From Laetmonice hystrix (taxonomy: Eukaryota), in NCBI GenBank assembly GCA_965235115.1, contig OZ249441.1, positions 15,066,001 to 15,130,000 on the forward strand: 64,000 nt of DNA, read 5' to 3'. Shown here piece after piece: positions 2,651 through 64,000 of the stretch (position 1 is its first letter; each line of letters starts with the position of its first letter). The notes beneath the pieces were generated by a model. That model did no database searches, was not told where the DNA came from, and worked only from the letters and a program-made list of their open reading frames with translations. Both the position numbers and the translations under genes were made by a program.

Positions 2651-2701
2651 GTGGAGGACATGCTGACGGTCAGATGTAACACCTCGTGTCGTCAACAACA
2701 G
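2651..2701 (+). CDS. ROS1: ROS1-like exon, first CxxxC pair (VEDMLTVRCNTSCRQQQ)
   Basis: ttcag|...cag|gtgagt, 51 nt, phase 0-0, CNTSC motif; separated from the next confident exon by 25 kb. Confidence 0.65.
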
Positions 2702-5700
2702 GTGAGTAGGACTCATTACTCAGGAACAGTTGGACTATTAAATTACTAGCTCAGGAACAGCTGGACTATTAAATTACTAGCTCAGGAACAACTGGGCCCG
2801 GTTTTTTGGTTTACTTTTCCACCATGAGCAAGGGTGAGCATGAGCTCATTCTCACCGTTTTCCATGAGGCGTGCTCATGGTGAGCAAGCTCACGTAAAAA
2901 CACCCCAAAAAACGAAAACAGTGAGCAAAACGGTGAGCATGAGCTTCTGCTCACCCTTGCTCAGCTCAACTCACCCTCACGGTGGAAAAGTAAACAAAAA
3001 AACCCGGGCCCAGGACTATTAAGATACTAGCTCAGGAACAGTTGGACTATTAAATTACATTGTGTACTAGCTCGGGAACAGCTGGACTATTAAATTACTA
3101 GCTCAGGAACAGCTGGACTATTAAATTACTACCTCAGGAACAGTTGGACTATTAAATTACTAGCTCAGGAACAGTTGGACTATTAAATTACTAACCCAGG
3201 AACAGTTGGACTATTAAATTACATTGTGTACTAGCTCAGGAACAGCTGGACTATTAAAGTACTACCTCAGCAACAGCTAGACTATTAAATTACTACCTCA
3301 GGAACAGTTGGACTATTAAATTACTAGCTCAGGAACAGTTGGACTATTAAATTACTAACCCAGGAACAGTTGGGCTATTAAATTACATTGTGTACTAGCT
3401 CAGGAACAGCTGGACTATTAAAGTACTACCTCAGCAACAGCTGGACTATTAAATTACTAACCCAGGAACAGTTGGGCTATTAAATTACTAGCTCAGGAAA
3501 AGTTGGACTATTAAATTACTAGCTCAGGAACAGTTGGACTATATTACTAGCTCAGGAACAGTTGGACTATTAAATTAACATATTCAATCAGGTCTTCGGT
3601 GTAATCATATCATTTATCATAATTGGTATCAAAGGCGATTGAGGGTGATTAACGATGTTTGGTTAATAGATGGTTTATTTTAAATAAAGAGCGAAGATTG
3701 TTATTGGTGGCTAGGGTAATAGGGCCTACCAATAAAAGTATTACCTTGATTTTTTTAAGCAATAAGTTTATAGACGCTTTCACTCTCTAGGTTGATTCTG
3801 TACATTACTTCTCGAAGCAGCTATAGACCTACTTCTGTTGGGATGCACAAGTTTTGGAGTATTCAGACTATTTGAAAAGTACTACAGCCGTGCTTGAGAA
3901 CGACCATTATGTGTTAATGAGCTTAGATCTAAAACGCGATTTACCTTGATATATGGCCGCGTACTACCGGTCTCGACACAACAGGCCATTATTCACCATT
4001 TACAAAATCTAAGGATAACTGCGCAGTTTTACCACTAAATCTAAGACACCAGTATATGTAAACTGGTTCAGTATCCGCCTTGTGGTGTCAATCATGCAAA
4101 GTTCACACGGGTTGAAAGGTGGTTCGGTATTCTGGCCAAAGTCAAATGCAGAGGTATGAAACGCTGTGCACAAGAGTGGAGGATTCGAATATCTGGGCCT
4201 ATAATATACTCGGGCACCACTGTAGTACCCTGGATGTGGACGACATATTTAACTCGTGCTGTAGATGTCTTCTCTAGCAGTCAGTAGCCCGCCATTCGGA
4301 AAGATGATAGGTAAGCCTTGCGTCATGCAACACCAGGTGTCAACAGAAAGCATTTCTGTGAATACATGTTTTTTTTCTGTGTGACGACAGGATACAGAAA
4401 CAGGATCTGTATTAGTTTGGAGGAGTTTGGCGGGGGCCTTTCCAGTTCCGGCATGGTCTTTCCGTGAGCTGACACGTGGCCTTTCAGTGGAAACTGTTGA
4501 AGATGAGAAGTTCTGTCTCTCTACAAGATGTTTCTAACCAGGGCTCCGTGTTGATTAAGTGGTCGTAATCCCTGACACTGGATAGCCACGTAGTCATTTG
4601 TCGATGGGGATATGTCCTGGTAATGCTGAAGTTGTTTTAGTACCTAGTCCGCCATACAACTCAACAGGTATAGTACAGAAAGGTCATTCCTTTACCTTGA
4701 GAAGTTTCACGAGGGTTTATTAGCCAAAGTTTTTAGTCATCAAAGAACCGGATTTAAAATGAATACTGACGGAAACTTTTGTGGTAATACGTATATATAG
4801 TCACTATTTTGAGTAAGTTTTTATCGGTGGGCGGGCACGAATTCTACTGCCTCTTATCATTTGGCATTAAGAACTCTGGCAACTCATATAATTATGGCAT
4901 AAATAATTCAGCCTGTACTCTTTTGTAGCATCTTAAAGGGGCATATTATGAGGAAACGTGAAAAATCGGTATTTCAAAGAACTTGCTGTTTTCATAAAGA
5001 TATCCTTCATTAAAATTGCTTGGTAAACAAAGACAGACTTATCAGGTTCATTTTGCGTGAGAAATCGAAGTTTATGAAGCTCCCTTGCCCGCTTCTCTGC
5101 CGATTTCGTCAAATATTTTTTGGGGGCATTCTGATGCCGGACGATCGAGTGCAACTGCTGAATTGTTTAGAAATAAGCGAAGCACGTGACTAACACTGTG
5201 CCGACACCTACCAGCGTAACTCGAGTTACCTAGGTTCAACATGGCGGACGGTAAGTTCAGCCCATTTTCTCCCTCACGATTGCTTCTCTATTAGCGCATT
5301 GTATATCTAAATATTTGGTTTGGGAAGAGTTTATGAACGGTTCATTATGTGTATGGGGTTCCTTCCATGTAATCTTAGTTGCTGAAGGAGAAATCGCGTA
5401 CTGTTTTGGGGCTAGTACCTGCGTAACTCTATCTCAGGGAAACAGACAAACCAACGTAACTCGAAGGCTTGTACCTGCGTAACTCTCTGTTTATGCACTA
5501 AGGTGCACACCCAGATAATATGATGCAAGGAGACAATTAGGGGGCCTACACCCAGGAGTGTTCATAAGGACCCTTATTTTTGTCCTATCCATACTTTTGA
5601 CGGGTGTGCCCAGCACAAACTGATCCATAGACATGTCTACAGCAAAATTAACCGAGTTCACCTTCCAGTAGTTACTTTGCCGAGTTACGCTGGTAACCGC

Positions 5701-8700
5701 CCAAAACTGGGTTAGAGTTACGCAGGTACCGCAGAATGAGTTACGCAGGTACTAGCCCCAAAACAGTACGCGATTTCTCCTTCAGCAACTAAGATTACAT
5801 GGAAAGAACCCCATACACATAATGAACCGTTCATAAACTCTTCCCAAACCAAATATTTAGATATATAATGCGCTAATAGAGAAGCAATCGTGAGGGAAAA
5901 AATGGGCTGAACTTACCGTCCGCCATGTTGAACCTAGGTAACTCGAGTTACGCTGGTAGGTGTCGGCACAGTGACTAAGCACATGCAGAGAGTGCACACG
6001 CAGGATGTGACGCAGTACGCGATTACATGGGTTGATGGGAGGTTGTCTACCAAATTATGGTGGGAGATGTGCTATCGGGAGAAATCTATGCGTTTGGTCG
6101 TATAGAACCTACTTGTGCTGCATACAAGACAAAATGCTGTGGTAGGATTATTTACTTGGATCCCTAGTACACGGTCATGTTGGATAATTGCCGGAAATCC
6201 TCCAAAACGTGTTCCATAGCATGCCCCTTTAAACAAGTCTGAACGGGAAAGGGGTACTTCTGATGAATTACAGTGGAAGAGTATTGCATAAGATATATTA
6301 TTAAAATATATATTTCAACTTTCAAACAAATTAACGACACCAACAGGCCACTGAACCACGATTCATTTTACCCCTTTTTTTCATATACCTCCTCAACGTA
6401 AACGATTATTGCCACGGTTAATCACTCCCCGTTAACCGGCAACGAATGGTATACCAGCCTCACATACCAACCCATCGTCTGACACTTGTTGACCAGTTTC
6501 ACTTTCAAGAAAAAAAGTTGACTTTTTTTTCCTTTTGATCCTTGGAGAAGCGATGGGCTAAGAGTTGGCAGGGCGCGCGGTTAGACATCGCTTTGAAGGC
6601 CACAGCAGAAGTCCATGATCTTTGTTGGAGGCATAGATCTCCGTCCCTGGCAGTCAAACTAAATGGGCTCTGTGAGTACCCGTCAGTTGGCCTCCTCACG
6701 CACAGAGGGTTTCAATAGAGGTTGGGGGGATCCGTCGTCTCGGCTGGCCCCATCGCCGCCTGTCCCCGGACTGAGATCTAGATAAGATTAGTCTAATCAC
6801 AGAACCTGTAGTCTAACACTTAGACACGTGGGTCGGATTCATTGACTTAATGAAAGGGGACATTTTGGTGGATGTGATTACCATTGACTCCAACCGAACA
6901 CACATGGTCGGACAACACCTGGTAAAGTCTGTGCGTGCGTGCTGTGCGTGCTGTGCGTGCAAGGAGTTATACAGTTGGTGTCGGATTCCCGGCCAACTGC
7001 AACTAACCAGGCAATTTGGACCTCAACCGTGTGAGTTATAGGGACCCATGGATTATGGGCAAGAAATAACTGAGCCTGAGGTGCTGCTGCTGCTTCTGCT
7101 GCTGCAGGACCTTCGAGTGCTTCGACTGCCTGGGACAGACAGAGCTGGCCAGGCAGCTGTTGAAAGCAGTCTTGTAACTTGTATAAATATCACTGTAATA
7201 CGTGTTCGGCCTGGTGCCTGGAGAACAGCTCACGTGGTAAGCGCAATCTTCGCTGATGAGTACGGGTGTAATATTTTATCTGTCTCCCAGAGCCTGTAGG
7301 AGGTGGACGGGGGGGGGGTCTCCCAGAGCCTGTAGGAGGGGGACGGGGTGGTCTCCCAGAGCCTGTAGGAGGGGGACGGGGGGGTGGTCTCGCAGAGCCT
7401 GTAGCAGGGGGACGGGGTGGTCTCCCAGAGCCTGTAGGAGGGGGACGGGGGGTCTCCCAGAGCCTGTAGGAGGGGGACAGGGGGGTCTCCCAGAGCCTGT
7501 AGGAGGGGGACGGGGTGGTCTCCCAGAGCCTGTAGGAGGGGGACGGGGTGGTCTCCCAGAGCCTGTAGGAGGGGGACGGGGGGGGTGGTCTCCCAGAGCC
7601 TGTAGGAGGTGGACGGGGGGGGGGTCTCCCAGAGCCTGTAGCAGGGAGACGGGGGGTCTCCCAGAGCCTGTAGGAGGGGGACGGGGGGGGGGGTGGTCTC
7701 CCAGAGCCTGTAGGAGGGGGACGGGGGTGTCTCCCAGAGCCTGTAGGAGGGGGACGGGGGTGGTCTCCCAGAGCCTGTAGCAGGGGGACGGGGGGGCTCC
7801 CAGAGCCTTAGGAGGGGGACAGGGGGTCTCCCAGAGCCTGTAGGAGGGGGACAGTGGGTGGTCTCCCAGAGCCTGTAGGAGGGGGATGGGGGGGGGGGGT
7901 CTCCCAGAGCCTGGAGGGGGACGGGGAGTGGTCTCCCAGAGCCTGTAGCAGGGAGACGGGGGTCTCCCAGAGCCTGTAGGAAGGGGACGGGGGTGGTCTC
8001 CTAGAGCCTGTAGGAGGGGGACGGGGGGTGGTGGTCTCCCAGAGCCTGTAGGAGGGGGATGGGGGGTGGTCTCCCAGAGCCTGTAGGAGGGGGATGGGGG
8101 GGGGGTCTCCCAGAGCCTGGAGGGGGACGGGGAGTGGTCTCCCAGAGCCTGTAGCAGGGGGAGGGGGGGGGTCTCGCAGAGCCTGTAGGAGGGGGACGGG
8201 GGGGTGGTCTCCCAGAGCCTGTAGGAGGGGGACGGGGGGGTCTCCCAGAGCCTGTAGGAGGGGGACAGGGGGGTCTCCCAGAGCCTGTAGGAGGGGGACG
8301 GGGGGCGGGGGTCTCCCAGAGCCTGTAGGAGGGGGACAGGGGGGTCTCCCAGAGCCTGTAGGAGGGGGACGGGGGTGGTCTCCCAGAGCCTGTAGGAGGG
8401 GGACAGGGGGGTCTCCCAGAGCCTGTAGGAGGGGGACGGGGGTGGTCTCCCAGAGCCTGTAGGGGGACAGGGGGTCTCCCAGAGCCTGGAGGGGGACGGG
8501 GAGTGGTCTCCCAGAGCCTGTAGCAGGGGGAGGGGGGTCTCGCAGAGCCTGTAGGAGGGGGACGGGGGGCGGTGTCCATGTGCGGCGCCTTTCCAATGAA
8601 GAAATCTCGATTCATATCTAGAAGTTCTCTCCATCTCCGTGATTTTAATCGAAGACAACGTCTTGGTTATCCCTGAAGCCGGCCTGCCTGACAGTTCCCG

Positions 8701-51400: not shown

Positions 51401-54400
51401 TCTGACTGTCCCAGCGTCCTGCTCTGAGTGTTCCAGCGTCCTACTCTGACTGTCTCAGCGTCCTGCTCTGACTCGCTCAGTGTCCAAGTATTTTTTCCAA
51501 GAATTTTTAAGAATTGCCACTATTTCAGCACCCTGTTCTGGTCGGAGGTGGACGTGTGGGGCCACGGGCGGATTATGCGGGCCCCAATGAACGGCTACTC
51601 GCGGGAGCAGGTGCTAGGATGGCAACCGAAGGAGGCGGGCCGCAGGAGGCGTGCCTCGCCCACCTGTCGGTGTCCTGCCATGCAGGTCAGCCCTGTCTTC
51701 CAGATGGACATGTCGGAGACAGGTAACGGACAGATATACTTTGTGGACAACACGACAGGCAGTATATGGGTGGCCAGCAACAACGGCTGTGACTGTAGGA
51801 GCGTTGTCGACGCTGCCGGACGCACCGATCTGGGTGAGTTGTTGACATGTTAATGTTAACATCGCAATGTTAAACCAGCGAGGCTATCTACTCCTTGTCC
51901 CGCTAACGCGAAATCTCTTGAATTCTCGTGACATACTTAAAGAAAATCTGTCCGAAAATTGAAATAAACGCAGTCAATTCAACAAAACTTGAGTAAAAAC
52001 AATTATTTGAAGGGGTTTCTAGCAGTCTGGTACTATGGCACGTCCATATCGACAATATTTTTAATTAATTAATTAAGCGTTTACCTATTTGGCTAGAGAC
52101 GAGAGCACGCGAATCAAATCATGGCCTTATTTGGATTATGGGGGGAGGGCGGGCGGAGCAGTGCGAGGCAACGCATGCGCCCAATCCCGTTGCTTAGTAA
52201 CGATCGCCCTAAAAATGCTAACGCGGTCATGGCGGTCGTTCTCGGTTCTCAGTCCATTGAGATGAAAAAATGGGATGTATCGCCTCATTATGGCTCATAA
52301 TCAACAAGAGACCTAGCACAACAATGTTATGGATACGACAGAATGTTTTATCAGTCCAGTGAGATAGTTTCAAGATCAGGTAAGCTTGAAATACGCGGAT
52401 TCGTAGGAGATGGGGACAAAACTCGGCGGCCTTAGGGTGATCGATTACCTATAAACGCCCTATTAAAGAGACGCGTCACTTTTCTCAGTGGCGCCACCTC
52501 GTGGCAATTGACGAACTCTATTTTTACACTTTGCAACGCGTTTTTTACGTCACTCAATGCTGTCAACAACACGGCAATGCAGAGGCAGAGTCAAGTCTGG
52601 CCGCTTCGCATCCCAGAAACAGTTTGACAAAAGGCTTCACGATGCCAGAAAAATGTACTTGACTATGTGTTTTAACATTGGAGTCTATGGGACCGATAAG
52701 ACCCTTGGTAGTGAAAATGTCGATATCTCATGAATTTCCATGGTGACATATGATTTTTTTTAATCTAAAGTGTTCAAAACAAGTCATGCAACAATTCTGA
52801 GAAGTATTTTCAGAATCTCTGGGTTAGAAATGTCTGAAAAAAATCTTCTCTCTTCTAATTCGAACCAAAAATTTCACGTATCTTTCTCTACTGTAGACTG
52901 TAGTAGTGCGAGTTGAAGGCCTATCTTCAAATGCTCATAACTCAGGATCCGATATGGTGACCCGCCATTTTCTTTGCACCAAAATACTCGAAAAATGTAG
53001 AATTATTTTATGTGAAAGTAGCCTGAAAATCTCTGGGTCAGAAATTTTTGGCTTATTATGTGTAGGCTTGCCACCCGACTCGATCGCTGTGGATCTCCAG
53101 CGGTTGTACTGGGCCCGGGAGGGGGACACTATCCTACACAGCATCCTGAAGAAGACGGGCAAGGGCTACCTGAAGAGAAACGTGTCTTTGTCCCACAAGG
53201 GAGGCCGGATCATCCAGGTGCTCGCTTACGGAACGCACCTGCAGCCAATGCCAGGTAGGTCATGACAGACTTATAACTACCTGCAGCCAATGCCAGGTAG
53301 GTCATGAAAGACTTATAACTACACCTGCAGCCAATGCCAGGTAGATCATGAAAGACTTATAACTACCTGCAGCCAATGCCAGGTAGGTCATGAAAGACTT
53401 ATAGCTACCTGTAGCCAATGCCAGGTAGGTCATGAAAGACATATAACTTCACCTGCAGCCAAAGCCAGGTAGGTCATGACAGACATATACTACCTGCAGC
53501 CAATGCCAGGTAGGTCATGACAGACATATAACTCTATCTGCAGCCAATGCCAGGTAGGTCATGACAGACATATAACTCCACCTGCAGCCAATGCCAGGTA
53601 GGTCATGACAGACATATAGCTACCTGTAGCCAATGCCAGGTAGGTCATGACAGACATATAACTCTGCCTGCAGCTAATGCCAGGTAGGTCATGACAGACA
53701 TCCTATAACTCTACCTGCAGCCAATGCCAGGTAGGTCATGACAGACATATAACTCTACCTGCAGCTAATGCCAGGTAGGTCATGAAAGACATATAACTCC
53801 ACCTGCAGCCAATGCCAGGTAGGTCATGACAGACATATAACTCCACCTGCAGCCAATGCCAGGTAGGTCATGACAGACATATAGCTACCTGTAGCCAATG
53901 CCAGGTAGGTCATGACAGACATATAACTCTACCTGCAGCTAATGCCAGGTAGGTCATGACAGACATCCTATAACTCTACCTGCAGCCAATGCCAGGTAGG
54001 TCATGACAGACATCCTATAACTCTACCTGCAGCTAATAGCCTTATGCCAGGTAGGTCATGACAGACATATAACTACCTGCAGCCAATGCCAGGTAGGTCA
54101 TGACAGACATACGACCTGCAGCTAATGCCAGGTAGGTCATGACAGACATATAACTACACCTGCAGCCAATGCCAGGTAGGTCATGACAGACATATAACTA
54201 CCTGCAGCCAATGCCAGGTAGGTCATGAAAGACTTATAACTCCACCTGCAGCCAATGCCAGGTAGGTCATGAAAGACATATAACTCTACCTGCAGCCAAT
54301 GCCAGGTAGGTCATGAAAGACTTATAACTACACCTGCAGCCAATGCCAGGTAGGTCATGAAAGACTTATAACTCTACCTGCAGCCAATGCCAGGTAGGTC

Positions 54401-57400
54401 ATGACAGACATCCTATAACTCTACCTGCAGCAAATGCCAGGTAGGTCATGAAATACATCCTATAACTCTACCTGTATCCAATGTCAGGTAGGTCATGACA
54501 GACCTCCCATAACTCCACCTGTATCCAATGTCAGGTAGACTATACTATAGCCCAGTTTCACTAACACCTTCAACCAATTTTATAGATAGGTCAGTCGTCT
54601 TCTGTACCAGAAGAATAGCGGGGTAATATTTTCTCTTTCTCCTAGACCCAGCATGTCTGCTGCCGACCGACTACAAAGGAAGACCAAGGCTGATAGAAAA
54701 CAGGAACACAAGTCTACACCTGTACCTGCCACCCTGGAAGTCAGGCCCTAACTGTTCTAACATTAGCCTACCTAAGGTACTCTACAAGGTTCACTATTGG
54801 GAGTTCAACGGCTCGGAGGATACCCATACCTGCTCAGACGACAAGAAAAAGTGTCAAGTTAAGGTCAGTGGCGTATCCAGGGGGGTTTCCAAGTATCCCG
54901 GAAGCCCCCCCCCCCTTAAAAAAATTACTATGTTAAGGACATTTTGGTAAAAAAAAAAGGGGGTGTAAAATGCATTATTTTAACCAAAGGAAACCTTCAT
55001 ATTTCCACACAAGATGTCCCGAGATTGCATTATTTGATGTCTTTTGTTAAATTTCCTAGAGGAGCATGGCCTAATGGCCATCTCTGAAGTACCTAAACTT
55101 CGGAAATCCCCCTTAAAAAATTTTGATACGCCACTGAAGGTCGGCATCAGTCCCTTGTGGTTTAATTGGAAAACAATGTCATTCTGCGCTTTATTTGAAT
55201 TATTTATCTGAAATATTTGAATGTTTAAGTAAAAGTAGCCGGTAAATGTCCTGTGCTTCAGATGACGTACGACAGCAGTGTGACGTTGGATGGCCTCAAG
55301 CCGTTCCAGAAGTATTTTGTAGAAGTGACAGCGGAGAACCACCACATGCAGAAGTATAAAATACCTGCTAGTGTTGGGGAACCGACCAAATTTATAACTG
55401 CGCCAGGAGGTACGTGTAGTCTGGAGATACTAATCAATGCCTTTTTATCTCGTATCTCATCAAATTTAATTCATTTTGTTCATCTTGTTCATTTTGTTTT
55501 GTGTCACAAATATAAATGTAGCGGTATTTTCCCTTTTCTTGGCACTAAATGTACACCTGAACAAAAGCACCTACTCTAAAAAGCACCACTCCATAAAAGT
55601 ATCCAGCAATGTAGAGTTTCTAAAGTTTTGATTGTTTTCGTCCTACTTCAGTTCCTTCCGCACCAAGAAACGTGAGAGCCATAGCCGTCGACCCAAGGTC
55701 AGTGAAGATATTCTGGGCGGAGCCTGCACAACCTAACGGAGAGCTGCGCGGCGTGTCATACCAGTTACATTGGGGTGAACGGGTTATTGTACCAGAGGTC
55801 AAACTACTGGGGATTTATGAGGGAAAGAACACACAATCCTACAGTTACACGCTCTCAGGCCTCAGCTCACATACCAAGTATTACTTCAAGGTGATCTTTG
55901 ACATTAGTAAATCCAGTATTTGAGAGTATAATCTAACCTTAACTTGTATATTGTAATTGAAGAATTGGATGAAAGACTATTGCTTGGGAATTCTGATTTT
56001 TGTCGCCGGGAGTCGCTCTGGGCCATGGATCTGTTTCTGACTCTTTTGAAACTTTCTATCATCATGCCTCAGTATTGTTCTAGTGTTCAAGTGTTGATAG
56101 GCCTACTAGGCCCTATTGCTGAGAGATGCTAGCATCATTTGGACACTTCCCAGGTCGTCTTAAAGTACCGATACTTATAATCTTCTTGTTAATTTTGAGC
56201 CACAATACAGTTATAAATTTATACCTGAACCTTCTAATGAATTGTACATGGCCCTGATACAGGTTGTGGCCTACTTCTCCGAAAACCCGGCTATGGGAGA
56301 GAGCAGCAGTCAGACAGTCAGTGCCCAGACTTTCTCGGAGCCCAACCCGGTGGTGCTGGTCGACCGCGGCCAGGACTGGATCACGGTGGCTTGGCAAGCT
56401 CCCTCTGACGGATCGATTGTGAAACACATCCTGCAGTTCTCCAAGGTATGTGATAACACTCGGGTGGTCTACAACTCGTTTTAAACTTGGCGAATATCGG
56501 AATCTCTCCGTCCATTATAATGATTGGAATGGTGATTAAAGTTTGTAGATCCATCGGGAGTATAATGTTGGTTAGGGACCGTTGTAATTGTGACTTTGAT
56601 ATCCTATACTTAATAATGACACCAATGATTTTATCTAGTCCTGCGCTAGTTTGATACTTGACCTTGACACTGAGCCTTTTCTCATTCACGCCGGGAAAGT
56701 TTGACCAATCGTCATCTCTCATATCTATAAACCAAACACCAATCCCAACTTTAAATTCAGTTCCAATATCCGAAAGCTAACCCTATAGTGCGGACCCAGG
56801 GGACCTACCCCCCCCCCCCCCCCGCCACTTTCCTCCACTTACCCATGGACTGTATTATTGTTGGTATTGTCAGGGAGATGGTTGGGAGAGCCAGGGCCCG
56901 GCAGTCAGAGTCACCCAGGCCGGGATGGTATACAATGAGACAGCCACCAACCTGACGGCTGATACCAGCTACGACTTCACCATGGCCGTCTGGTACAATA
57001 CGACGGTGTCGAAACTCTACCGGTCCCAACCTCCGCAACACTTCATTACTACAGGTACGACCATCTCACTGAACGCAGTCGTTGGGAAATATGTAGCAAA
57101 AAGGGCTTGTTTCGGGGCAGGCGGCGTTTTCTCGAGGAGAAATGGTATTTTTGTCATTTTACCGTTAATTCAGGATACATTTAAATACCAAATCAGGCCT
57201 GGTGTCGTTTTATTAAAGTCAATTAGTCATTCATACCTGCGGCTCAAGTACCCGAAGTTAAAGTCACCCACATTTAATATCACATCACATGATGTCTGAC
57301 TGTGTTACGTAATTAGTACGTTGTCATGGTGATCAAGAATTAACTAATCTTTGATTTACAGCCGGTTACCCAGGGCAACCGGAGTCTCCGACGGTGACGA

Positions 57401-60400
57401 CCCGGTCAGATGATATCGCCGTGGTGAGATGGACCCCGCCGGATGATGGAGGTCTACCCATTGATCTCTACCGGCTGACCGTCAGGTGAGACCGGGCATC
57501 GGGTTGTCAAAACTTAAGATCTGGCTTAAGGTCAAGCTTAACGCTTCTGATTTGCTGCTTTGCTTCAGCCAGCATTTGGGGGGGGGGGGGTTTCACAAAC
57601 CCTGATCCATAAGAATCCCCCTCTATCAAGGACGAGCAACTTTAAAAAATCTTTAAAAAATCTGACATCTTTGATTCCATTCAATACTATGTTTACGCGC
57701 TGTTCTCTGTGTGACGTGGGTGTTTGACGTTTGGTGGTTTATGACGTCATCAGGCGGAGTGACGACACTAACTGGACGGTGGTATATAACGGAAGCAGTA
57801 CGGTATGGGAGGTTAGCGGCCTGGAGCTGGAAAGATCCTACGTGTTCAGGGTGGAGGCCCACAACTCCATGGGCTGGGGGTCTCCCTCACCCGGCAGTTT
57901 TCAACATACGTACACCCCGCCGCTTGCAAGTAAGTCCCTCTCACCGTCTCCAGGGGCGGGTCCAGGATTTTGTATTGGGGGAGAGGGGGTTGGTGACCCC
58001 CATATTTGCTGTGATGTTGGAAATGCTGGGGTATCCTCCCCCGAGAAAAAAAATAATTATAGCAAGTGAAGTTGGGGGCTTTACCCCACTATACGTTTTA
58101 ATGTTACAGGATCAGTAGGCATATTATATTTTCTTATTTTGTAAAATTCTTTTCATTATAATACTAGGCCCTATTATCTTTCCTCAAATACAAAGTGTGT
58201 GGCTGTCTTGTTCCAAGCTCCCGGATGTTTACTCTTCCACTGTATGTACGGTGGCCCAAAACTACAAAGTCTGCTGCACAGCAGCACCTCGGCAAACTGG
58301 TGTGTTCAACAGCAAAACTGTTCTGCTACACGGGGTCTTTCTGCTGCTCTGCGGTAGAAGTGCTGCGCCGCACGGATACTCTGTGCTGCTCCACGCCCAA
58401 GTGAGATGCTGCACACCAGTTGGAGGTGTTCCACGGTGTCTAGGTCCGTTAGTCCCACAGCCCAATTAATAGTCCCACAGCCCACTTTGGCTGTTGGACC
58501 AATGGACTGTCAGACCAACGGGAAAATATAACTAACCCTAAACCTAACCTTAACTCTAACCCATAGGGTGTACCGTCATGTAGCCTAAACAGAAACGACA
58601 GGTGCACGTACGGCAGTGTTAATTCCGTATTAATTAATTTCTGACATTTTCGATCACAGTTTTTCATGTGGTGTGGGCCCATTGGTCCGACAGCCCATTG
58701 GTCCGACAGCCCATTGGTCCGACACCCTATGGGTCAGAGTTAAGGTTAGGTTTAGGGTTAGTTATATTTTCCCATTGGTCCGACAGTCCATTTATCACAC
58801 CGTGCAGCACACTACTTGGTGTGCCGCACCACAGAGGTTTTGTGACGCAGACTAGTTTGCCCGTCGAGCACTATGAATTTACCGTGCAGTGCATAAATTT
58901 AACTGTGGAGCAGTTAAATCCAAAGTCACTTTGGTGGGAGAAACGGGAGTTTATTTGCTACAACCTACAACTCCAATACAAAATGTTCCATGGGCTTGCG
59001 CGCTGAAGACCTACTTATTCGGTACAACATTTGCCTCGAATGGATAAAGAAGCGCGCGACTGACCACACTTGTTTATGGTCAAATGCCAAGTAAACACAA
59101 GGCGCAACTTGCAGTATGTGCAACCGCTGTAGCCTACCGCCGGCTTTACATATTATAGCTGATTCATACAAAGGAAAGGCAGAAGCGCCACACACAAAAT
59201 AATCTACGAAGCGCGCACTAAGACAACCTCTTAAGTTTCAATGTAATCATGCACTGTTACATACACGCTGTCAATGTCAGAGTAATTGCTGTTACATAAC
59301 GCTGTCAACAAATAGCCGATATTTAAAGTGACGACTAGTGAACTTTACATACAGCCAACTAGCATCCTTAACAATAAGTCGGCTGAAGAATACTTTAACC
59401 TAATTATAAATGCTGCTAGACAAAAGATAAAACAGAAGCGCCGGCCATTAAACAACATTTTTGAAATAACATTCTGGTAGCTGTTTGCTTGAGAAACGCG
59501 CTCCTAATGAGTCTCGGATGGACATGTCTCTGCCCAGGTGTGGGAGGGTGGGAAAAGTTCAACTGCTCCGTACGAGCGCATGGAAGAAACTGATGCCTGG
59601 TATTAGTTTCACTGCATCTTTACATATCCCTCGTTAGTCACCGCTCTGAAGCTGTCCACACTGGTTTATTGTATATGCATCAAAGGCCAACTGACCCGTT
59701 ATTATGTAATCACATATGCCCAACGACTTCAACCTCCTAAACCCCGGAACGGTCGGGATTAATTACCACGCATGCTGGGTGACGTGGATTTAAACTAAGA
59801 TAAACTCCTTTTATCTCCCCTTAAATCCAAAGTCACTTTGGTGGGAGAAACGGGAGTTTATTTGCTACAACCTACAACTCCAATACAAAATGTTCCATGG
59901 GCTTGCGCGCTGAAGACCTACTTATTCGGTACAACATTTGCCTCGAATGGATAAAGAAGCGCGCGACTGACCACACTTGTTTATGGTCAAATGCCAAGTA
60001 AACACAAGGCGCAACTTGCAGTATGTGCAACCGCTGTAGCCTACCGCCGGCTTTACATATTATAGCTGATTCATACAAAGGAAAGGCAGAAGCGCCACAC
60101 ACAAAATAATCTACGAAGCGCGCACTAAGACAACCTCTTAAGTTTCAATGTAATCATGCACTGTTACATACACGCTGTCAATGTCAGAGTAATTGCTGTT
60201 ACATAACGCTGTCAACAAATAGCCGATATTTAAAGTGACGACTAGTGAACTTTACATACAGCCAACTAGCATCCTTAACAATAAGTCGGCTGAAGAATAC
60301 TTTAACCTAATTATAAATGCTGCTAGACAAAAGATAAAACAGAAGCGCCGGCCATTAAACAACATTTTTGAAATAACATTCTGGTAGCTGTTTGCTTGAA

Positions 60401-63280
60401 AAACGCGCTCCTAATGAGTCTCGGATGGACATGTCTCTGCCCAAACACCACAAGTAGAGAGTATGGTAGGAAAAAAAATAGACTGGCATGTCCAACCGTT
60501 AAGTAAAAGTACCAAGCAACACACATTATGTAGACGTAGAAACACCAGAACCCCTTGGCAAACAAACCAAGATGTACAAAGTCACCAGTTCATAACCTAA
60601 TAGGATGGTGGGTAACCGACTCCATAAACGTATGGCCAGGGTTGATTCCATAATGTGGAGCTGATGGTGGCCGACTTCTCAAAATGGAGATCAGTCTTTG
60701 ATAACCGTGCGGTTCGTGCAGTCTGGAAACGGCATCGGCTACTACATTTTCTACACCAGGGAAATAGACTGCCTTCATTTTGAAATTAAACTTAGCGGAC
60801 AACCAGAAAATTCTCCGTAATGACTTCATTAAGAAGGGGTCTTTGCAGCTACCTTTGTTCAAGATTCCGACGGCCGCTTGGTTGTCGCAGTAGACAAAAA
60901 CACGATGATTTGCCCACTGTTTTGCCCACTGAGTGGCGGCAGTCTCCACCGCCAGAGTTTCTTTGAAATTAATGTGTAGACCTGAAGCGCCAGTCCAGCT
61001 TTTGAAAGGGGTATACACATAGTCTCTCCCGAACACCGCCCCCGCAGCGACCGGACAGGCATCTGTCCATACTGGTACTACTGGTCGATTGTCCATCATC
61101 GGGGTACATCCATTAAAGACATCCAGAAACTCAATCCACCAGTCGATGTCTTCGCGCATGGCTTGTGTGACGCGCGCACGGTGCCAAGGTGACTTCAATT
61201 GCGATATGGGATCGATCAGTCTCCGGATGAAAGTTCTGCCACCTTGTATGCACTGGCAGGCCCAGTTTAGTTTACCAACCAGTGACTGTAGATCACGCTT
61301 TTTGATCTTAGATTTTTGCCGAACGTGGCGCAAGAGTTGTCTAATGTCCTTGCATTTCTCCGCAGGCAGCTCCAGGGTCATAACAACAGTATTCAGCATA
61401 ATTCCCAGAAAAGTGAGCTTCTGACTTGGGCCGGCAACTTTGTTGTAGTTTATGCTAAACCCAAGTTTGCGTAATGTCCTAATCAGCTCATTTAGCGCTC
61501 TCCTGCACTCCTCTTTTGTGTCCGCTATGATTAGAAAATCGTCCAAATACACTATGATGGAAGGGTAGCCTTTCCTGGCCATAATCCGCCTGACTGCCTG
61601 GCCCAGTTCGTGGAATATCTCTGGCGACCGCCTGGCACCGAAGGGCAAACGTTTGTCTACCAGGTAAGTAGGTGCATTGTCGCCAGTAAATATCCACTTT
61701 AGGCCAGTGGCAGCATAATTTGAAGGATGGACCAAGACTGACCTGTAAGCGTTGGATAGGTCTACCTTTGCCAGATATGCGCCTTGTGGCATGACATCCA
61801 CAGCATCCTGAATTGACATATATTGGAACTTGTTGTGCCACGCGAAGGTATTGAGGGACGAGCCTACCGGTCTGCTGCAGTCATGTATGAGGCGCACACG
61901 CCCATCCTTCTTGGGAATGGCACCCAGCGCTGATACGATTGGGGGTGCTTCCGATACGGTAGCATATCTGCCATGGACGAGCTCCTCCAATATCTGGGCC
62001 TCCACCTTGTCCGTATGCCGCGCGCACGTGGCTGACCTGTAGTTGGGGATCTCCACGCGTTCGCCGATGGCTTTTGGGTCGGTGATGTGGAAGCCATGTC
62101 TGATCCCCTCCAACAGGTAGCCACGCTTGGGGTCGTCGTCTTGCAGTTCTTCCTCCCATGCTGCATATATCAGGGCCCCACTTACACCAGTTTGTAGCGG
62201 GACCCTGCTCCGTTTTTTGTCCTCCTATTGTGGCAAACGCCAGACTGCTGGATACCTGCACTGCTTGGCTCCGGGGATGTACCTCTGCCATTTTCGGTTG
62301 ACCCTGGGAAAGGTTTTTCCCTGCGCCTGAATCTTGTGTGCACGTATTTGCATTTCCTTCCATAAGGGCAATACTTTCCCGAACTGCTTAGCCATTCGCG
62401 ACATCTCGGAGGGGCTAGGCACATCTTGAAGTCCAGATACAGCTGTGCACTCGCTAATCCATAGTTCAACAGTTCAACACCTTAGATAAAATTAATCCAT
62501 AATCCAGTTTTTGGCAAACATCCTGCTTTGCACCGACACCTCATGACTCCTAGTACGGAACTTTCATGTCAAGAACGACAACTTTTACACATACCACTGC
62601 TCAGATAAAAGGTTCCACTGCCAAAAAGTTCAACTGCTCCGTACGAGCGCATGGAAGAAACTGATGCCTGGTATTAGTTTCACTGCATCTTTACATATCC
62701 CTCGTTAGTCACCGCTCTGAAGCTGTCCACACTGGTTTATTGTATATGCATCAAAGGCCAACTGACCCGTTATTATGTAATCACATATGCCCAACGACTT
62801 CAACCTCCTAAACCCCGGAACGGTCGGGATTAATTACCACGCATGCTGGGTGACGTGGATTTAAACTAAGATAAACTCCTTTTATCTCCCCCACAAGTAG
62901 CCGTGCAGCAGAGCATTTTAGCTGTGCCGCAGCAGAAAACATCCGTGCCGCACCACATTTTTGATGTGTCGCGCCACAAAGTACGGGTGGAGTACATCAG
63001 CTTGCCGTGCAGCAAGGCATTTTGGTACTGTGCAGCACACTTTGTAGTTTTGGGCCACCGTAGTACGGAGTACATCAGCTTGCCGTGCAGCAAGGCATTT
63101 TGGTACTGTGCAGCACACTTTGTAGTTTTGGGCCACCGTATTAATGTAATATAGTAACATGTTCAATACGTGTTGTACGTTCAGCGGCAGCCAGACCGGC
63201 CGATCAGCTCACAGTCATCCTGGCAGTCATCTTTGCCATGGTCTTCATCGTGGCTTTTGTCTTCATCTGCATCATCCTAG
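2651..63280 (+). CDS. ROS1: ROS1/sevenless-family receptor tyrosine kinase, ectodomain plus TM, 32 exons reconstructed (partial gene)
   Basis: Exons with GT-AG boundaries and chained phases sum to 5719 nt. Domain order is four CxxxC pairs, FN3, FN3, YWTD propeller, FN3, propeller, FN3s, propeller, FN3s, TM. Motifs such as GRGAWQGWEYEVK, VRAFTEGGTGPWSEP, DPGGGFMYWSTLDTVEVARLDG and LALDPDRRALYWLV match my recollection of ROS1 (no database search run). Confidence 0.9.
2718..3577. repeat. 31-bp minisatellite (with 40-bp variant)
   Basis: Unit ctagctcaggaacagttggactattaaatta; starts 16 nt after the 2701 donor. Confidence 0.95.
2792..3013. mobile_element. MITE (Harbinger-like) inserted in a minisatellite
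   Basis: ~32-bp TIR ctgggcccggtttttt(g)gtttacttttccacc; internal tgagca/tgctca motifs; ctg/cag ends could be a CWG TSD. Confidence 0.7.
4937..6228. mobile_element. Kolobok-like MITE (TTAA TSD)
   Basis: ttaa|aggggcat…atgcccct|ttaa, imperfect ~14-bp TIR starting AG. Confidence 0.7.
5194..5973. mobile_element. Transib-like MITE, 780 bp with 236-bp TIRs
   Basis: Termini CACTGTG…CACAGTG, 5-bp TSD actaa (5189-93, 5974-78), TIRs 5194-5429 and 5738-5973 with ~3 mismatches. Confidence 0.8.
7234..7293 (-). other. Candidate 60-nt exon of a nested antisense transcript
   Basis: cctcctacag|gctctg…accac|gtgagc on the minus strand. Confidence 0.5.
7283..8569. repeat. G-rich ~29-36-bp minisatellite, ~40 copies
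   Basis: Unit ggtctcccagagcctgtaggagggggacggggg. Confidence 0.95.
8665..10228. repeat. 47-bp minisatellite, ~34 copies
   Basis: Unit ggttatccctgaagccggcctgtctgacagttcccgatgagatgcta. Confidence 0.95.
10211..10332 (-). other. Candidate 122-nt exon of a nested antisense transcript
   Basis: tttttactccag|gggtc…ctgtcag|gtaggc on the minus strand; all three frames contain a stop. Confidence 0.5.
12344..13099. repeat. 47-bp minisatellite, ~16 copies
   Basis: Unit gggatgaacatgacataacctatctggccctgtcatacacacattat. Confidence 0.95.
17358..18737. repeat. Composite minisatellite of 54-bp and 57-bp units
   Basis: Both units share gtacctgcgccatgactgaggctcta; the two types occur in alternating blocks. Confidence 0.95.
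20400..21297. repeat. 45-bp minisatellite, ~20 copies
   Basis: Unit gtaattcagaatgaatatgtcagggggtgcagtccctctgatggt. Confidence 0.95.
21813..22018. mobile_element. PIF/Harbinger-like MITE, 206 bp
   Basis: taa|tggccctgtcacacc…ggtgtgacagggcca|taa, 15-bp TIR with TAA TSD. Confidence 0.75.
24451..24593. repeat. 36-bp tandem repeat, 4 copies
   Basis: Unit gggagctgtgaactggtggtctgcaggccagccaaa. Confidence 0.95.
26313..26598. repeat. 42-bp tandem repeat, ~7 copies
   Basis: Unit gtctcagcgacacggtgagactttgacacgttgctatcgtta. Confidence 0.95.
27361..27422. repeat. (TA)n microsatellite
   Basis: ~30 TA units. Confidence 0.97.
27943..28002 (+). CDS. ROS1: ROS1-like exon (CVNGCKLWRVALDQTCVASC)
   Basis: ttttcag|...tgc|gtaagt, 60 nt, phase 0-0, two CxxxC pairs. 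Confidence 0.85.
31309..31344 (+). CDS. ROS1: ROS1-like micro-exon (NNASNGDAQDSE)
   Basis: tcttgtag|...gag|gtaaac, 36 nt, phase 0-0, plausible linker between Cys pairs. Confidence 0.7.
31729..31789 (+). CDS. ROS1: ROS1-like exon (VPMCMFGCRKAVEVYVQNIA)
   Basis: tttcag|...cag|gtcagt, phase 0-1, CMFGC pair. Confidence 0.85.
34198..34415 (+). CDS. ROS1: ROS1-like exon, FN3 (…VELQWQE…NLHPFTSYR)
   Basis: ttgcag|...aga|gtaagt, phase 1-0, FN3 signature LHPFTxY. Confidence 0.92.
35597..35899 (+). repeat. 60-62-bp tandem repeat containing the ROS1 acceptor, 5 copies
   Basis: AG acceptors give exon starts at 35625, 35685, 35747, 35807 and 35867. Confidence 0.95.
35867..35948 (+). CDS. ROS1: ROS1-like exon (FRVVVGISNVQQLQSKPSHPIVTKPSG)
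   Basis: tttcag|...g|gtaagg, phase 0-1; acceptor is the last copy of a tandem array. Confidence 0.88.
36313..36636 (+). CDS. ROS1: ROS1-like exon, FN3 (VPSGAP…LKPGTEYSISVAARNRFGLGP)
   Basis: cctcag|...a|gtgagt, phase 1-1. Confidence 0.92.
37051..37167 (+). CDS. ROS1: ROS1-like exon (…AYLILGANHSVRKQD…GNIN)
   Basis: gcctag|...g|gtagga, phase 1-1; alternative in-frame acceptor at 37057. Confidence 0.85.
38014..38494. repeat. 44-bp minisatellite, ~11 copies
   Basis: Unit ggaatcgcagttggagttagcgttgaatgaactaaagatttact. Confidence 0.95.
38770..39453. repeat. 32-bp minisatellite, ~21 apparently identical copies
   Basis: Unit tgattgatcacctctgtgaatcccgagcgacc. Confidence 0.97.
41040..41227 (+). CDS. 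ROS1: ROS1-like exon, propeller (LAIHYYKRYIFVSD…SVDWLHDNLYIAE)
   Basis: tgacag|...aag|gtcagc, phase 1-0. Confidence 0.92.
41433..41527 (+). CDS. ROS1: ROS1-like exon (IVRCSLDG…ITADPYNG)
   Basis: atgcag|...gg|gtaagt, phase 0-2. Confidence 0.9.
41491..41733 (+). repeat. 60-bp tandem repeat containing the ROS1 donor, 4 copies
   Basis: aatgg|gtaagt with GT at 41528, 41588, 41648 and 41708. Confidence 0.95.
41877..42307 (+). CDS. ROS1: ROS1-like exon, propeller (YLYWVHEG…FYWTNG…QPIP)
   Basis: ggacag|...g|gtgcgg, phase 2-1, YWTD-type motifs. Confidence 0.93.
42476..42562 (+). CDS. ROS1: ROS1-like exon, FN3 start (VPLQKPQRL…LWWEAP)
   Basis: ttccag|...g|gtgagc, phase 1-1. Confidence 0.9.
42838..43044 (+). 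CDS. ROS1: ROS1-like exon, FN3 (GRGAWQGWEYEVK…GPWSEP)
   Basis: ttacag|...g|gtgaga, phase 1-1. Confidence 0.93.
43426..43542 (+). CDS. ROS1: ROS1-like exon (DKVEPHLVYTT…)
   Basis: ttgtag|...c|gtaagg, phase 1-1. Confidence 0.88.
44007..44173 (+). CDS. ROS1: ROS1-like exon, propeller (…VAYDWPARKLFWSN…)
   Basis: ttgtag|...cag|gtgaga, phase 1-0. Confidence 0.9.
44487..44836 (+). CDS. ROS1: ROS1-like exon, propeller (ILRSRLNG…DPGGGFMYWST…LYWLV)
   Basis: gagcag|...gt|gtgagt, phase 0-2. Confidence 0.93.
45095..45279 (+). CDS. ROS1: ROS1-like exon (KHGLQYYSNRLFWMN…)
   Basis: tttcag|...g|gtgagt, phase 2-1; missed by the ORF track. Confidence 0.9.
46854..47101 (+). CDS. ROS1: ROS1-like exon, FN3 (…PEPVDCSRIEVSGRWDSFRLSW…)
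   Basis: gcctag|...cca|gtaagt, phase 1-0; alternative in-frame acceptor at 46890. Confidence 0.85.
48348..48687. repeat. 28-bp minisatellite, ~12 copies
   Basis: Unit gatgtttagtagcgatcacggttttgat; followed by (gatatcat)n at ~48765-48848. Confidence 0.93.
48928..49066 (+). CDS. ROS1: ROS1-like exon (…LRPYSRLGVSIRSCTSWGCS…)
   Basis: gtccag|...g|gtgagt, phase 0-1. Confidence 0.9.
49769..50013 (+). CDS. ROS1: ROS1-like exon, FN3 (APSVPENP…WSPSAHPNG…YKFK)
   Basis: tcgcag|...aag|gtgcgt, phase 1-0. Confidence 0.92.
50280..50537 (+). CDS. ROS1: ROS1-like exon (VSACTSVGCS…LYWIDR…)
   Basis: gtgcag|...acg|gtacgt, phase 0-0. Confidence 0.92.
50737..50930 (+). CDS. ROS1: ROS1-like exon, propeller (…SVDWVGRALYWME…HPYH)
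   Basis: ctgcag|...ag|gtaact, phase 0-2. Confidence 0.92.
50983..51475. repeat. 22-bp minisatellite filling most of an intron
   Basis: Unit tgactgtctcagggtcctgctc. Confidence 0.95.
51529..51833 (+). CDS. ROS1: ROS1-like exon (TLFWSE…GRRRRASPTCRC…GCDC…)
   Basis: tttcag|...g|gtgagt, phase 2-1. Confidence 0.92.
53066..53254 (+). CDS. ROS1: ROS1-like exon (GLPPDSIAVD…LYW…LQPMP)
   Basis: gtgtag|...g|gtaggt, phase 1-1. Confidence 0.92.
53237..54538 (+). repeat. ~41-47-bp minisatellite containing the ROS1 donor, ~30 copies
   Basis: Unit acctgcagccaatgccag|gtaggtcatgacagacatataactc. Confidence 0.95.
54646..54863 (+). CDS. ROS1: ROS1-like exon (DPACLLP…CSNISLP…)
   Basis: tcctag|...aag|gtcagt, phase 1-0; missed by the ORF track. 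Confidence 0.92.
54866..55136. mobile_element. 271-bp MITE inserted within a splice donor
   Basis: 12-bp TIR cagtggcgtatc/gatacgccactg, flanked by direct repeat aaggt (54861-65, 55137-41). Confidence 0.82.
55262..55409 (+). CDS. ROS1: ROS1-like exon, FN3 (…LKPFQKYFVEVTAEN…TAPG)
   Basis: cttcag|...g|gtacgt, phase 0-1. Confidence 0.92.
55652..55890 (+). CDS. ROS1: ROS1-like exon, FN3 (VPSAPRNV…WAEPAQPNG…YYFK)
   Basis: cttcag|...aag|gtgatc, phase 1-0. Confidence 0.92.
56263..56445 (+). CDS. ROS1: ROS1-like exon (VVAYFSE…ITVAWQAP…)
   Basis: atacag|...aag|gtatgt, phase 0-0. Confidence 0.9.
56874..57054 (+). CDS. ROS1: ROS1-like exon, FN3 (…NLTADTSYDF…FITT)
   Basis: tgtcag|...g|gtacga, phase 0-1. 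Confidence 0.9.
57362..57485 (+). CDS. ROS1: ROS1-like exon, FN3 (AGYPGQPESP…WTPPDDGGLPIDLY)
   Basis: ttacag|...ag|gtgaga, phase 1-2; missed by the ORF track. Confidence 0.92.
57754..57929 (+). CDS. ROS1: ROS1-like exon, last FN3 (…YVFRVEAHNSMGWG…)
   Basis: catcag|...a|gtaagt, phase 2-1. Confidence 0.92.
58501..58792. repeat. Foldback with 71-bp inverted arms containing telomere-like ggttaggtttagggttag
   Basis: 58501-58571 is the reverse complement of 58722-58792 with 3 mismatches; short cattggtccgacagcc repeats lie inside. Confidence 0.8.
58914..59536 (-). repeat. Split direct repeat B2 (623 bp)
   Basis: Copy of 59821-60443; gives the duplicated 76-aa ORFs in the track. Confidence 0.95.
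59553..59820 (-). repeat. Split direct repeat A2 (268 bp)
   Basis: Copy of 62624-62891, offset 3071. Confidence 0.95.
59821..60443 (-). repeat. Split direct repeat B1 (623 bp)
   Basis: Copy of 58914-59536, offset 907, one mismatch seen. Confidence 0.95.
60590..62224 (-). CDS. Reverse transcriptase-RNase H (pol) of the Ngaro-like element
   Basis: Open frame without stops. RT motifs KVDLSNAY, LPFGARRSP, YLDDF; RNase H motifs WTDAC, HINFKE, YCDN, NVVADAVSR. No ATG near the 5' end. Confidence 0.93.
   Translation of the reverse strand, partial: EDKKRSRVPLQTGVSGALIYAAWEEELQDDDPKRGYLLEGIRHGFHITDPKAIGERVEIPNYRSATCARHTDKVEAQILEELVHGRYATVSEAPPIVSALGAIPKKDGRVRLIHDCSRPVGSSLNTFAWHNKFQYMSIQDAVDVMPQGAYLAKVDLSNAYRSVLVHPSNYAATGLKWIFTGDNAPTYLVDKRLPFGARRSPEIFHELGQAVRRIMARKGYPSIIVYLDDFLIIADTKEECRRALNELIRTLRKLGFSINYNKVAGPSQKLTFLGIMLNTVVMTLELPAEKCKDIRQLLRHVRQKSKIKKRDLQSLVGKLNWACQCIQGGRTFIRRLIDPISQLKSPWHRARVTQAMREDIDWWIEFLDVFNGCTPMMDNRPVVPVWTDACPVAAGAVFGRDYVYTPFKSWTGASGLHINFKETLAVETAATQWAKQWANHRVFVYCDNQAAVGILNKGSCKDPFLMKSLRRIFWLSAKFNFKMKAVYFPGVENVVADAVSRLHEPHGYQRLISILRSRPPSAPHYGINPGHTFMESVTHHPIRL
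62171..62218 (-). promoter_or_regulatory. Candidate -1 ribosomal frameshift signal (A AAA AAC plus stem-loop)
   Basis: Heptamer at 62218-62212 is in the correct ORF1 frame, a -1 shift enters the pol frame, and a hairpin at 62207-62171 begins 4 nt downstream. Confidence 0.7.
62182..62424 (-). CDS. 80-aa ORF1 with CCCH zinc finger (CREWLSSSGKYCPYGRKCKYVH), gag-like remnant
   Basis: ATG at 62424, C-x10-C-x5-C-x3-H spacing, overlaps the pol frame by ~40 nt. Confidence 0.7.
   Translation of the reverse strand: MCLAPPRCREWLSSSGKYCPYGRKCKYVHTRFRRREKPFPGSTENGRGTSPEPSSAGIQQSGVCHNRRTKNGAGSRYKLV
62624..62891 (-). repeat. Split direct repeat A1 (268 bp)
   Basis: Matches 59553-59820 with no difference that I could see. 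Confidence 0.95.
63185..63280 (+). CDS. ROS1: ROS1-like transmembrane exon (TAARPADQLTVILAVIFAMVFIVAFVFICIIL)
   Basis: gttcag|...g|gtgagt, phase 1-1, ~23 hydrophobic residues. Confidence 0.9.
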   Translation, partial: RQPDRPISSQSSWQSSLPWSSSWLLSSSASS

Positions 63281-63335: not shown

Positions 63336-64000
63336 CTAGGTTTCTGTCAGTATACTTGATATCCCAACAGATATAGAACCTAGCTGAGTGAAAGCCAGGG
63401 CTAGGTTTCTGTCAGTGTACTTGATATCTCAACAGATATAGAACCTAGCTGAGTGAAAGCCAGGACTAGGTTTCTGTCAGTATACTTGATATCTCAACAG
63501 ATATAGAACCTAGCTGAGTGAAAGCCAGGGCTAGGTTTCTGTCAGTATACTTGATATCCCAACAGATATAGAACCTAGCTGAGTGAAAGCCAGGGCTAGG
63601 TTTCTGTCAGCATACTTGATATCTCAACAGATATAGAACCTAGCTGAGTGAAAGCCAGGGCTAGGTTTCTGTCAGTATACTTGATATCCCAACAGATATA
63701 GAACCTAGCTGAGTGAAAGCCAGGGCTAGGTTTCTGTCAGTGTACTTGATATCTCAACAGATATAGAACCTAGCTGAGTGAAAGCCAGGGCTAGGTTTCT
63801 GTCAGTATACTTAATATCTCAACAGATATAGAACCTAGCTGAGTGAAAGCCAGGGCTAGGTTTCTGTCAGTATACTTGATATCTCAAGAGACATAGAACC
63901 TAGCTGAGTGAAAGCCACGGCTAGGTTTCTGTCAGTATACTTGATATCTCAACAGATATAGAACCTAGCTGAGTGAAAGCCAGGGCTAGGTTTCTGTCAG
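63336..64000. repeat. 65-bp minisatellite with internal inverted repeat (runs off the window)
   Basis: Unit ctaggtttctgtcagtatacttgatatcccaacagatatagaacctagctgagtgaaagccaggg. Confidence 0.95.

Follow-up and report, generated by a model that had tools for sequence, protein, structure and literature searches.

A probable −1 ribosomal frameshift signal at the ORF1/pol junction of an Ngaro-like retrotransposon in Laetmonice hystrix

Introduction

According to a 2003 survey cited in PMC5009743, 28 of 51 long terminal repeat (LTR) elements of animals have pol in the −1 frame, and the same paper counts the heptamer A AAA AAC as one of those on which mammalian ribosomes shift most readily. Here we describe such a heptamer in a different kind of carrier. 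A 64,000-nucleotide (nt) stretch of the genome of Laetmonice hystrix (assembly GCA_965235115.1, contig OZ249441.1, positions 15,066,001 to 15,130,000 of the forward strand; hereafter the window, whose own numbering is used throughout) carries on its minus strand a retrotransposon resembling those of the Ngaro group, in which a short zinc-finger open reading frame (ORF), ORF1, overlaps a pol frame for reverse transcriptase (RT) as well as RNase H. On the evidence given below, the junction between the two is very probably a signal for programmed −1 ribosomal frameshifting by classical tandem slippage.

The junction shares with the gag-pol and gag-pro signals of retroviruses and LTR elements a heptamer of the X XXY YYZ form close to where the upstream ORF ends and a pol frame at −1 that has no start of its own; a putative downstream structure is also present in the window copy. 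Unlike the carriers of those signals, the window element has split direct repeats and neither a protease nor a DDE integrase, and its upstream product falls short of a full Gag, being in the window lineage a zinc-finger peptide of 42-80 amino acids (aa). Compared with the retroviral and LTR-element stimulators, the structure in the window lineage is a plain hairpin placed 4-7 nt after the heptamer, and it is restricted to some lineages.

Ngaro elements are diagnosed by a repeat layout of the form A1 ... B1-A2-B2 (PMC9210276; PMC4157794). Their ORFs may overlap (PMC9210276; PMC3783388) and are described as usually non-overlapping (PMC3266345). Like Ngaro (PMC9210276, PMC4157794, PMC3266345), the window element has A1 equal to A2 and B1 equal to B2, the order ORF1, RT/RNase H and then, in its relatives, a recombinase, and no methyltransferase; unlike Ngaro, the window copy and two related loci (L093 and L081) have no recombinase, and ORF1 is reduced to a mini-gene in the window lineage. 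An earlier reading of this DNA from its letters alone (the sequence-only reading) had proposed a retrovirus-style frameshift here and knew of no demonstration of one for Ngaro. In the papers searched, no heptamer, readthrough stop or +1 motif is described at the Ngaro ORF1/RT junction, though a frameshift may be mentioned in the original Ngaro paper (Mol Biol Evol 2004), in Repbase notes or in a more recent review. The frameshift mechanism is of a well-known kind; what is new, as far as we have checked, is its occurrence in this family of carriers, and the finding would extend gag-pol-style recoding to tyrosine-recombinase retrotransposons.

Results and discussion

The ORF1/pol junction of the window copy

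The coding features of the element are as follows.

62182-62424, minus strand: mini-ORF1, 80 codons plus stop (ATG at 62424, stop at 62184-62182), consisting of the initial Met, a CCCH zinc finger and a basic tail
62338-62403, minus strand: CCCH zinc finger, C8 to H29 of ORF1, spaced C-x10-C-x5-C-x3-H as read in translation
62212-62218, minus strand: slippery heptamer, six A then C, which ORF1 reads as ..A AAA AAC in the X XXY YYZ register
60590-62224, minus strand: pol frame (RT/RNase H), 544 codons plus stop (60592-60590), uninterrupted, in the −1 frame of ORF1
61397-61918, minus strand: reverse transcriptase domain, pol residues 103-276 (Pfam RVT_1, E=3.6e-16)
60710-61087, minus strand: probable RNase H region, pol residues ~380-505, suggested by invariant D/E/D/D-type columns in the homologue alignment

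The sequence-only reading had claimed an in-register A AAA AAC heptamer in ORF1, a pol gene in the −1 frame, and no pol ATG for about 135 codons. We recovered each of these: the heptamer occupies 62218-62212, the −1 frame is open from 62224 to 60593 (544 codons), and its first Met is codon 136, upstream of which lie residues that are invariant in the alignment of relatives. Because the −1 frame is closed upstream by a stop at 62227-62225 and ORF1 itself stops downstream, a productive slip is confined to 62224-62185, a segment of about 40 nt. The probability that an in-register heptamer falls inside this overlap by chance is ~0.003; counting both strands, the window holds 27 copies of the heptamer, where shuffles give an expectation of 12, and the element itself holds only one. 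The junction has two marks of a canonical eukaryotic −1 programmed frameshift signal, a heptamer in the zero-frame register and an overlapping −1 ORF without its own start codon. Adding 71 ORF1 codons to 540 pol codons gives a fusion of ~610 aa, the length that had been proposed.

The profile built on the pol protein matches retroviral and LTR-element RTs in the PDB. The assignment of the RNase H region is also consistent with PF17917, which is annotated on four homologues among the matches listed, and with one PDB polyprotein match that extends to profile position 495.

ORF1 gave a weak Pfam match to zf-CCCH_DUS3L (E=1.6e-5, below the cut-off), and ORF1 proteins of relatives match only the zinc finger in the window (tblastn, 62329-62403). 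Its small size recurs in other copies. A homologue from another assembly, P0121 (76 aa, 56% identity to the window ORF1), has the same finger and a tail whose last residues are T-K-N; it is encoded directly upstream of a 509-aa RVT_1 gene, with no additional gene called downstream. In three related loci, L082 (1-207), L091 (339-602) and L093 (4801-4956), ORF1 has 42-46 codons from its Met and ends K-N before the stop. A mini-ORF1 of 42-80 aa is thus a conserved trait of the window's subclade and not the defect of one copy. Since the short ORF1 is common to the relatives of this subclade, a fusion of ~610 aa would be the expected product of the mini-ORF1 lineage.

Relatives of the element and conservation of the heptamer

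At E<=1e-10 the window pol protein matches 1471 homologues in the database, whose entries carry no family names; identity is 49-78% for the best 120. We obtained DNA for 93 relative loci from metagenomes, metagenome-assembled genomes (MAGs) labelled as bacteria, and public assemblies. Eight of the loci (L083-L090) lie in MAGs labelled Sedimenticola, Flammeovirgaceae and 'bacterium'; these copies most likely reflect contamination of the bins with host DNA. A scan of viral contigs found no relative of the element. The usual anatomy in the family is an ORF1 of 340-460 codons with a C-terminal CCCH finger, a pol of 540-600 codons and an ORF3 of 330-370 codons. The ORF3 profile matches Cre recombinase (E=4.9e-14) and XerD, its H-x-x-R and Y columns are invariant, and ORF3 homology was present downstream of pol in 24 of the 30 loci with room for it. 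The recombinase profile and this distribution identify the family as tyrosine-recombinase retrotransposons without a methyltransferase. The end of pol and the recombinase ORF usually overlap in different frames (for example, L002 2688-2712 and L004 3113-3258), and L001 has a 315-codon ORF after pol (2414-3358) with neither recombinase homology nor a Pfam match. Gene calls for pol in the relatives begin at an internal Met or at alternative codons (490-515 aa) and miss the fusion, so that the reading proposed here would correct an annotation in which gene callers overlook the ORF1-pol product.

When the loci were sorted by the frame that carries the zinc finger, three junction layouts emerged. 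Layout A, with pol overlapping ORF1 in the −1 frame, comprises 40 relatives, with 35-61% pol identity, and the window copy. Conservation of the heptamer and its frame in relatives had been named beforehand as a check, and it came out clearly: 35 of the 40 layout-A relatives have the exact heptamer of the window, read in the same register and situated close to the ORF1 end. Two of the other five differ at the last base only and two have another X XXY YYZ heptamer; the single locus with none is a copy with a shortened pol frame. About 33 of the heptamer junctions are non-redundant, and of 595 pairs of junctions just 10 showed any nucleotide similarity within +/-150 nt of the heptamer. The first A of the heptamer belongs to an ORF1 codon that specifies any of six amino acids (S, P, E, A, T or G) but invariably has A as its last base; in the rest of these genes, AAA accounts for 60% of Lys codons and AAC for 45% of Asn codons. 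This variation of the amino acid around a fixed final A, together with the codon usage, indicates that the constraint on the heptamer acts on the RNA, not on the peptide.

The plus strand of the relatives' loci holds 72 heptamers in 352 kb, about half of them at the ORF1/pol junction. In 15 of 37 loci the ORF1 stop is immediately adjacent to the heptamer, and in 22 of 37 no more than 3 nt separate the two. The opening of the pol frame is 0-6 nt upstream of the heptamer in 11 of 37, and the base after the A run is C in 35 of 37. Two loci, L088 and L089, have a heptamer without a six-A run. Among loci with a long pol, no pol-frame Met precedes the conserved W in 18 of 24 of the −1 type and 13 of 16 of the readthrough type described next.

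In layout B (23 loci, 20 of them with an ORF1 of at least 150 codons), ORF1 and pol share one frame and are separated by a single stop. Of the 20 loci with a long ORF1, 14 have TGA at this point, with C as the next base in 11, and six have TAG, with G as the next base in five. UGA-C is a leaky context, type II readthrough has UGA followed by CGG or CUA, and type III has UAG-G with a structure (PMC3542737). With one frame and a single stop, the layout-B sister lineages (relatives only, not the window copy) resemble type II/III sites, and their junction looks like programmed readthrough. The layout is seen in L005, L006, L011, L013, L014, L018, L020, L027, L032 and L035, and also in L037, L040, L043, L044, L048, L060, L069, L073, L076 and others.

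Layout C, with pol in the +1 frame, is confined to a monophyletic group of six loci (L015, L023, L033, L034, L042 and L028). In five of the six, the ORF1 register reads cgt-ttt-cgt two codons upstream of the ORF1 stop; L028 is the locus without it. We regard this motif as a candidate +1 frameshift site. The title of PMC3498833 names an influenza A virus +1 site containing UUU_CGU, and the motif of these relatives (again not the window copy) resembles it over six letters, but the preceding codon differs.

On a neighbor-joining tree of pol, which carries no support values, layouts A and B interleave. Taken together, the conserved heptamer, the leaky in-frame stops and the conserved +1 motif suggest that pol is made across the family as an extension of ORF1 by recoding, with the heptamer serving as the −1 device; for most of the family a fusion of ~900 aa would be expected.

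In L092 (~4760-4990), pol homology starts abruptly at the conserved G-A-L codons, just after a polypyrimidine tract and AG, and neither ORF1 nor a heptamer is found upstream; it is either a truncated copy or has a splice acceptor at this point.

A hairpin downstream of the heptamer

Two further features follow the heptamer in the window copy.

62208-62211, minus strand: spacer between heptamer and hairpin, 4 nt (7 nt in L082, L091 and L093)
62171-62207, minus strand: hairpin of 12 base pairs including two G-U, a one-base bulge, a further 3 base pairs and a 6-nt loop

The hairpin is the one drawn in the sequence-only reading, at the same distance and with the same pairing and loop. It includes the ORF1 stop, and its 3' arm coincides with the G-A-L codons conserved in pol. 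Folding had been suggested as a check: the 76-nt context has a free energy of −25.4 kcal/mol (z=−2.62), 3 of 200 dinucleotide shuffles were as stable, and the hairpin stands at the 2nd percentile relative to other positions of the element. The same helix can be formed in the window copy, L082, L091 and L093 (~60% pol identity), where 95.5% of alignment cells are paired compared with 32-57% in slid controls. Across these four sequences two pairs show compensatory changes on both sides and three show a one-sided change. Strong pairing between the segment after the heptamer and the G-A-L codons also occurs in L001, L002, L003, L025, L071 and L087. Pairing among the layout-A relatives is bimodal: the stem, whose covariation had been proposed as a further check, is kept in the window lineage and in a few other lineages, but not family-wide.

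Structure and age of the element

The whole element and its non-coding parts are as follows.

58914-62891, minus strand: Ngaro-like element, 3978 nt, in the order A1 - leader - ORF1 - pol - B1 - A2 - 17 nt - B2, delimited by its split direct repeats and coding parts
62624-62891, minus strand: repeat A1, 268 nt, identical to A2 at 268/268 positions
62425-62623, minus strand: leader from A1 to the ORF1 ATG, read directly from the letters
59821-60442, minus strand: repeat B1, 622 nt, with one mismatch to B2
59553-59820, minus strand: repeat A2, 268 nt, directly adjoining B1
58914-59535, minus strand: repeat B2, 622 nt, differing from B1 at 1/622 positions and separated from A2 by 17 unique bases

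The split direct repeats that characterize Ngaro are thus present in the expected order, A1 ... B1-A2-B2, and pol encodes RT/RNase H without a methyltransferase, RVT_1 being its sole Pfam match (the RNase H part is assigned as above). The identity of the A repeats and the single mismatch between the B repeats point to a recent insertion of the window copy. The third mark of the group was not found: 23 recombinase proteins of relatives gave no tblastn match anywhere in the 64-kb window, the pol stop lies 147 nt upstream of B1, and the element has no space for a tyrosine recombinase ORF downstream of pol. The Ngaro label given in the sequence-only reading fits the split direct repeats and, probably, the RT, but the window copy and its nearest relatives lack the tyrosine recombinase. 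Given that a recombinase is present in 24 of the 30 relatives with room for it, the window copy appears to be a recombinase-less derivative of a tyrosine-recombinase family. The marks of an LTR element or retrovirus were absent, since the repeats are split direct repeats and not LTRs, and a Pfam search gave neither a protease nor a DDE integrase domain. An Rfam search of the element returned one match only, at chance level, and the remaining ORFs of the window yielded no informative matches.

Two other copies are built in this way. In L093 (~4351-8454) and L081 (1276-5123) the split direct repeats are nearly identical, and the sequence that follows pol contains neither a recombinase ORF nor recombinase homology. 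Such young copies without a recombinase imply that integration is supplied in trans or proceeds by another route.

Proposed frameshift and alternative explanations

In the proposed mechanism, ribosomes translating the 80-codon ORF1 would arrive at the heptamer at 62218-62212, and the majority would read on and terminate nine codons further. A minority would slip back by one base, with both tRNAs re-pairing, and then read the remaining 540 codons of pol, yielding the ORF1-RT/RNase H fusion (~610 aa) in a low and constant proportion to the ORF1 product. The hairpin at 62207-62171 would probably act as the pausing element in the window lineage. The slippage itself, its efficiency, the stimulatory role of the hairpin and the expression of the window copy are what we infer from the sequence and its comparison with relatives.

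Several observations weigh against this interpretation. Ahead of the ORF1 ATG, the leader holds five or more other ATG triplets (62600-62425), and for this reason translation of ORF1 in the window copy is not assured. The spacer of 4 nt is at or below the usual range. The covariation test compares only four sequences, and the 3' arm of the helix is also under coding constraint. In the layout-A relatives there was no general excess of nested structure after the heptamer (median percentile ~0.45; Kolmogorov-Smirnov (KS) p=0.80 and p=0.13), and a duplex test between the segment after the heptamer and the codons before the conserved W was not significant family-wide (KS p=0.11). Finally, the junction comparison omits the closest relatives, P0001, P0002, P0084 and P0121 (74-78% identity, sample ERZ26222911), as well as P0011, P0016 and P0019. 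Because the family-wide structure tests were negative or non-significant, we dropped the idea of a universal stimulatory hairpin; the stem appears to be a genuine trait in some lineages without being what defines the family signal. The leader ATGs on the minus strand at 62425-62600 could be upstream ORFs or hint at a transcription start further downstream.

The same ATGs would also suit a pol that is translated independently, by reinitiation after an ORF1 that behaves like an upstream ORF, from a non-AUG start, or from a spliced or subgenomic mRNA, with the heptamer kept for some other reason. An ORF1 of 42-80 codons, as in this subclade, is short enough for eukaryotic reinitiation, and in L092 pol homology begins right after a polypyrimidine tract and AG. 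However, the window pol frame has no Met for 135 codons and has conserved residues upstream of it, and most relatives pair the heptamer with an ORF1 of 340-460 codons, after which efficient reinitiation is not expected. Independent translation also leaves both the register-specific nucleotide conservation and the leaky stops of the sister lineages unexplained, and we consider it unlikely, although possible in the mini-ORF1 lineage. A frameshift could alternatively arise in the template, if RNA polymerase or the element's own RT stuttered on the six-A run and a minority of transcripts gained an extra A that joins the frames. The site is indeed a homopolymer run, and transcriptional slippage on A runs is documented in some plant RNA viruses (PMC7618844; reviewed in PMC5009743). 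Yet the run is only six A; its register is fixed in 35 of 40 loci and the next base is C in 35 of 37, which is relevant to tRNA re-pairing and not to polymerase stutter; and the heptamers of L088 and L089 have no six-A run at all. Moreover, relatives have a leaky stop at the same junction, a solution that favors a translational mechanism, and template slippage seems to us unlikely.

It may also be asked whether the frame offset is simply decay, the copy being a dead fragment whose heptamer and hairpin coincide by accident. The absence of a recombinase and of most of the ORF1 seen in distant relatives would fit a fragment, and a heptamer and hairpin in a single sequence can be due to chance (~0.003 for the heptamer). 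Against this, pol runs uninterrupted over 544 codons, and the identical A repeats and B repeats with one difference in 622 positions indicate a recent insertion. The mini-ORF1 and the lack of a recombinase are shared with relatives in other assemblies, and the heptamer is conserved across the family, which together make decay very improbable. Programmed −1 frameshifting by tandem slippage is the explanation that we favor.

A family with exchangeable recoding signals

The comparison raises a broader picture, which we put forward with about even confidence. A large Ngaro-like clade, probably residing in marine invertebrate genomes, may produce its RT only as an ORF1 fusion and may have switched repeatedly among a −1 heptamer, a leaky stop and a +1 motif, and its recombinase-less subclade with an ORF1 of 42-80 aa may still be inserting, with integration in trans or otherwise. 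The occurrence of −1, readthrough and +1 arrangements at one junction in one family would offer a natural comparative series on how recoding signals are exchanged, and the same series bears on whether a downstream structure is dispensable for a very slippery heptamer. The mini-ORF1 copies with near-identical repeats and no recombinase raise the separate question of their route of integration.

Repeats around the element

The element is flanked by a 40-nt inverted repeat with 93% complementarity, located at 58247-58286 on one side and at 63023-63062 and 63101-63140 on the other; the element may have inserted into another repeat or a foldback element. A 78-bp unit is present in two copies at 62989-63143, and a 65-bp tandem array of at least 10 copies begins at 63336 and runs past the window end at 64000. 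Further away, a satellite-like array of a 44-bp unit extends over ~1.3 kb at 53237-54538.

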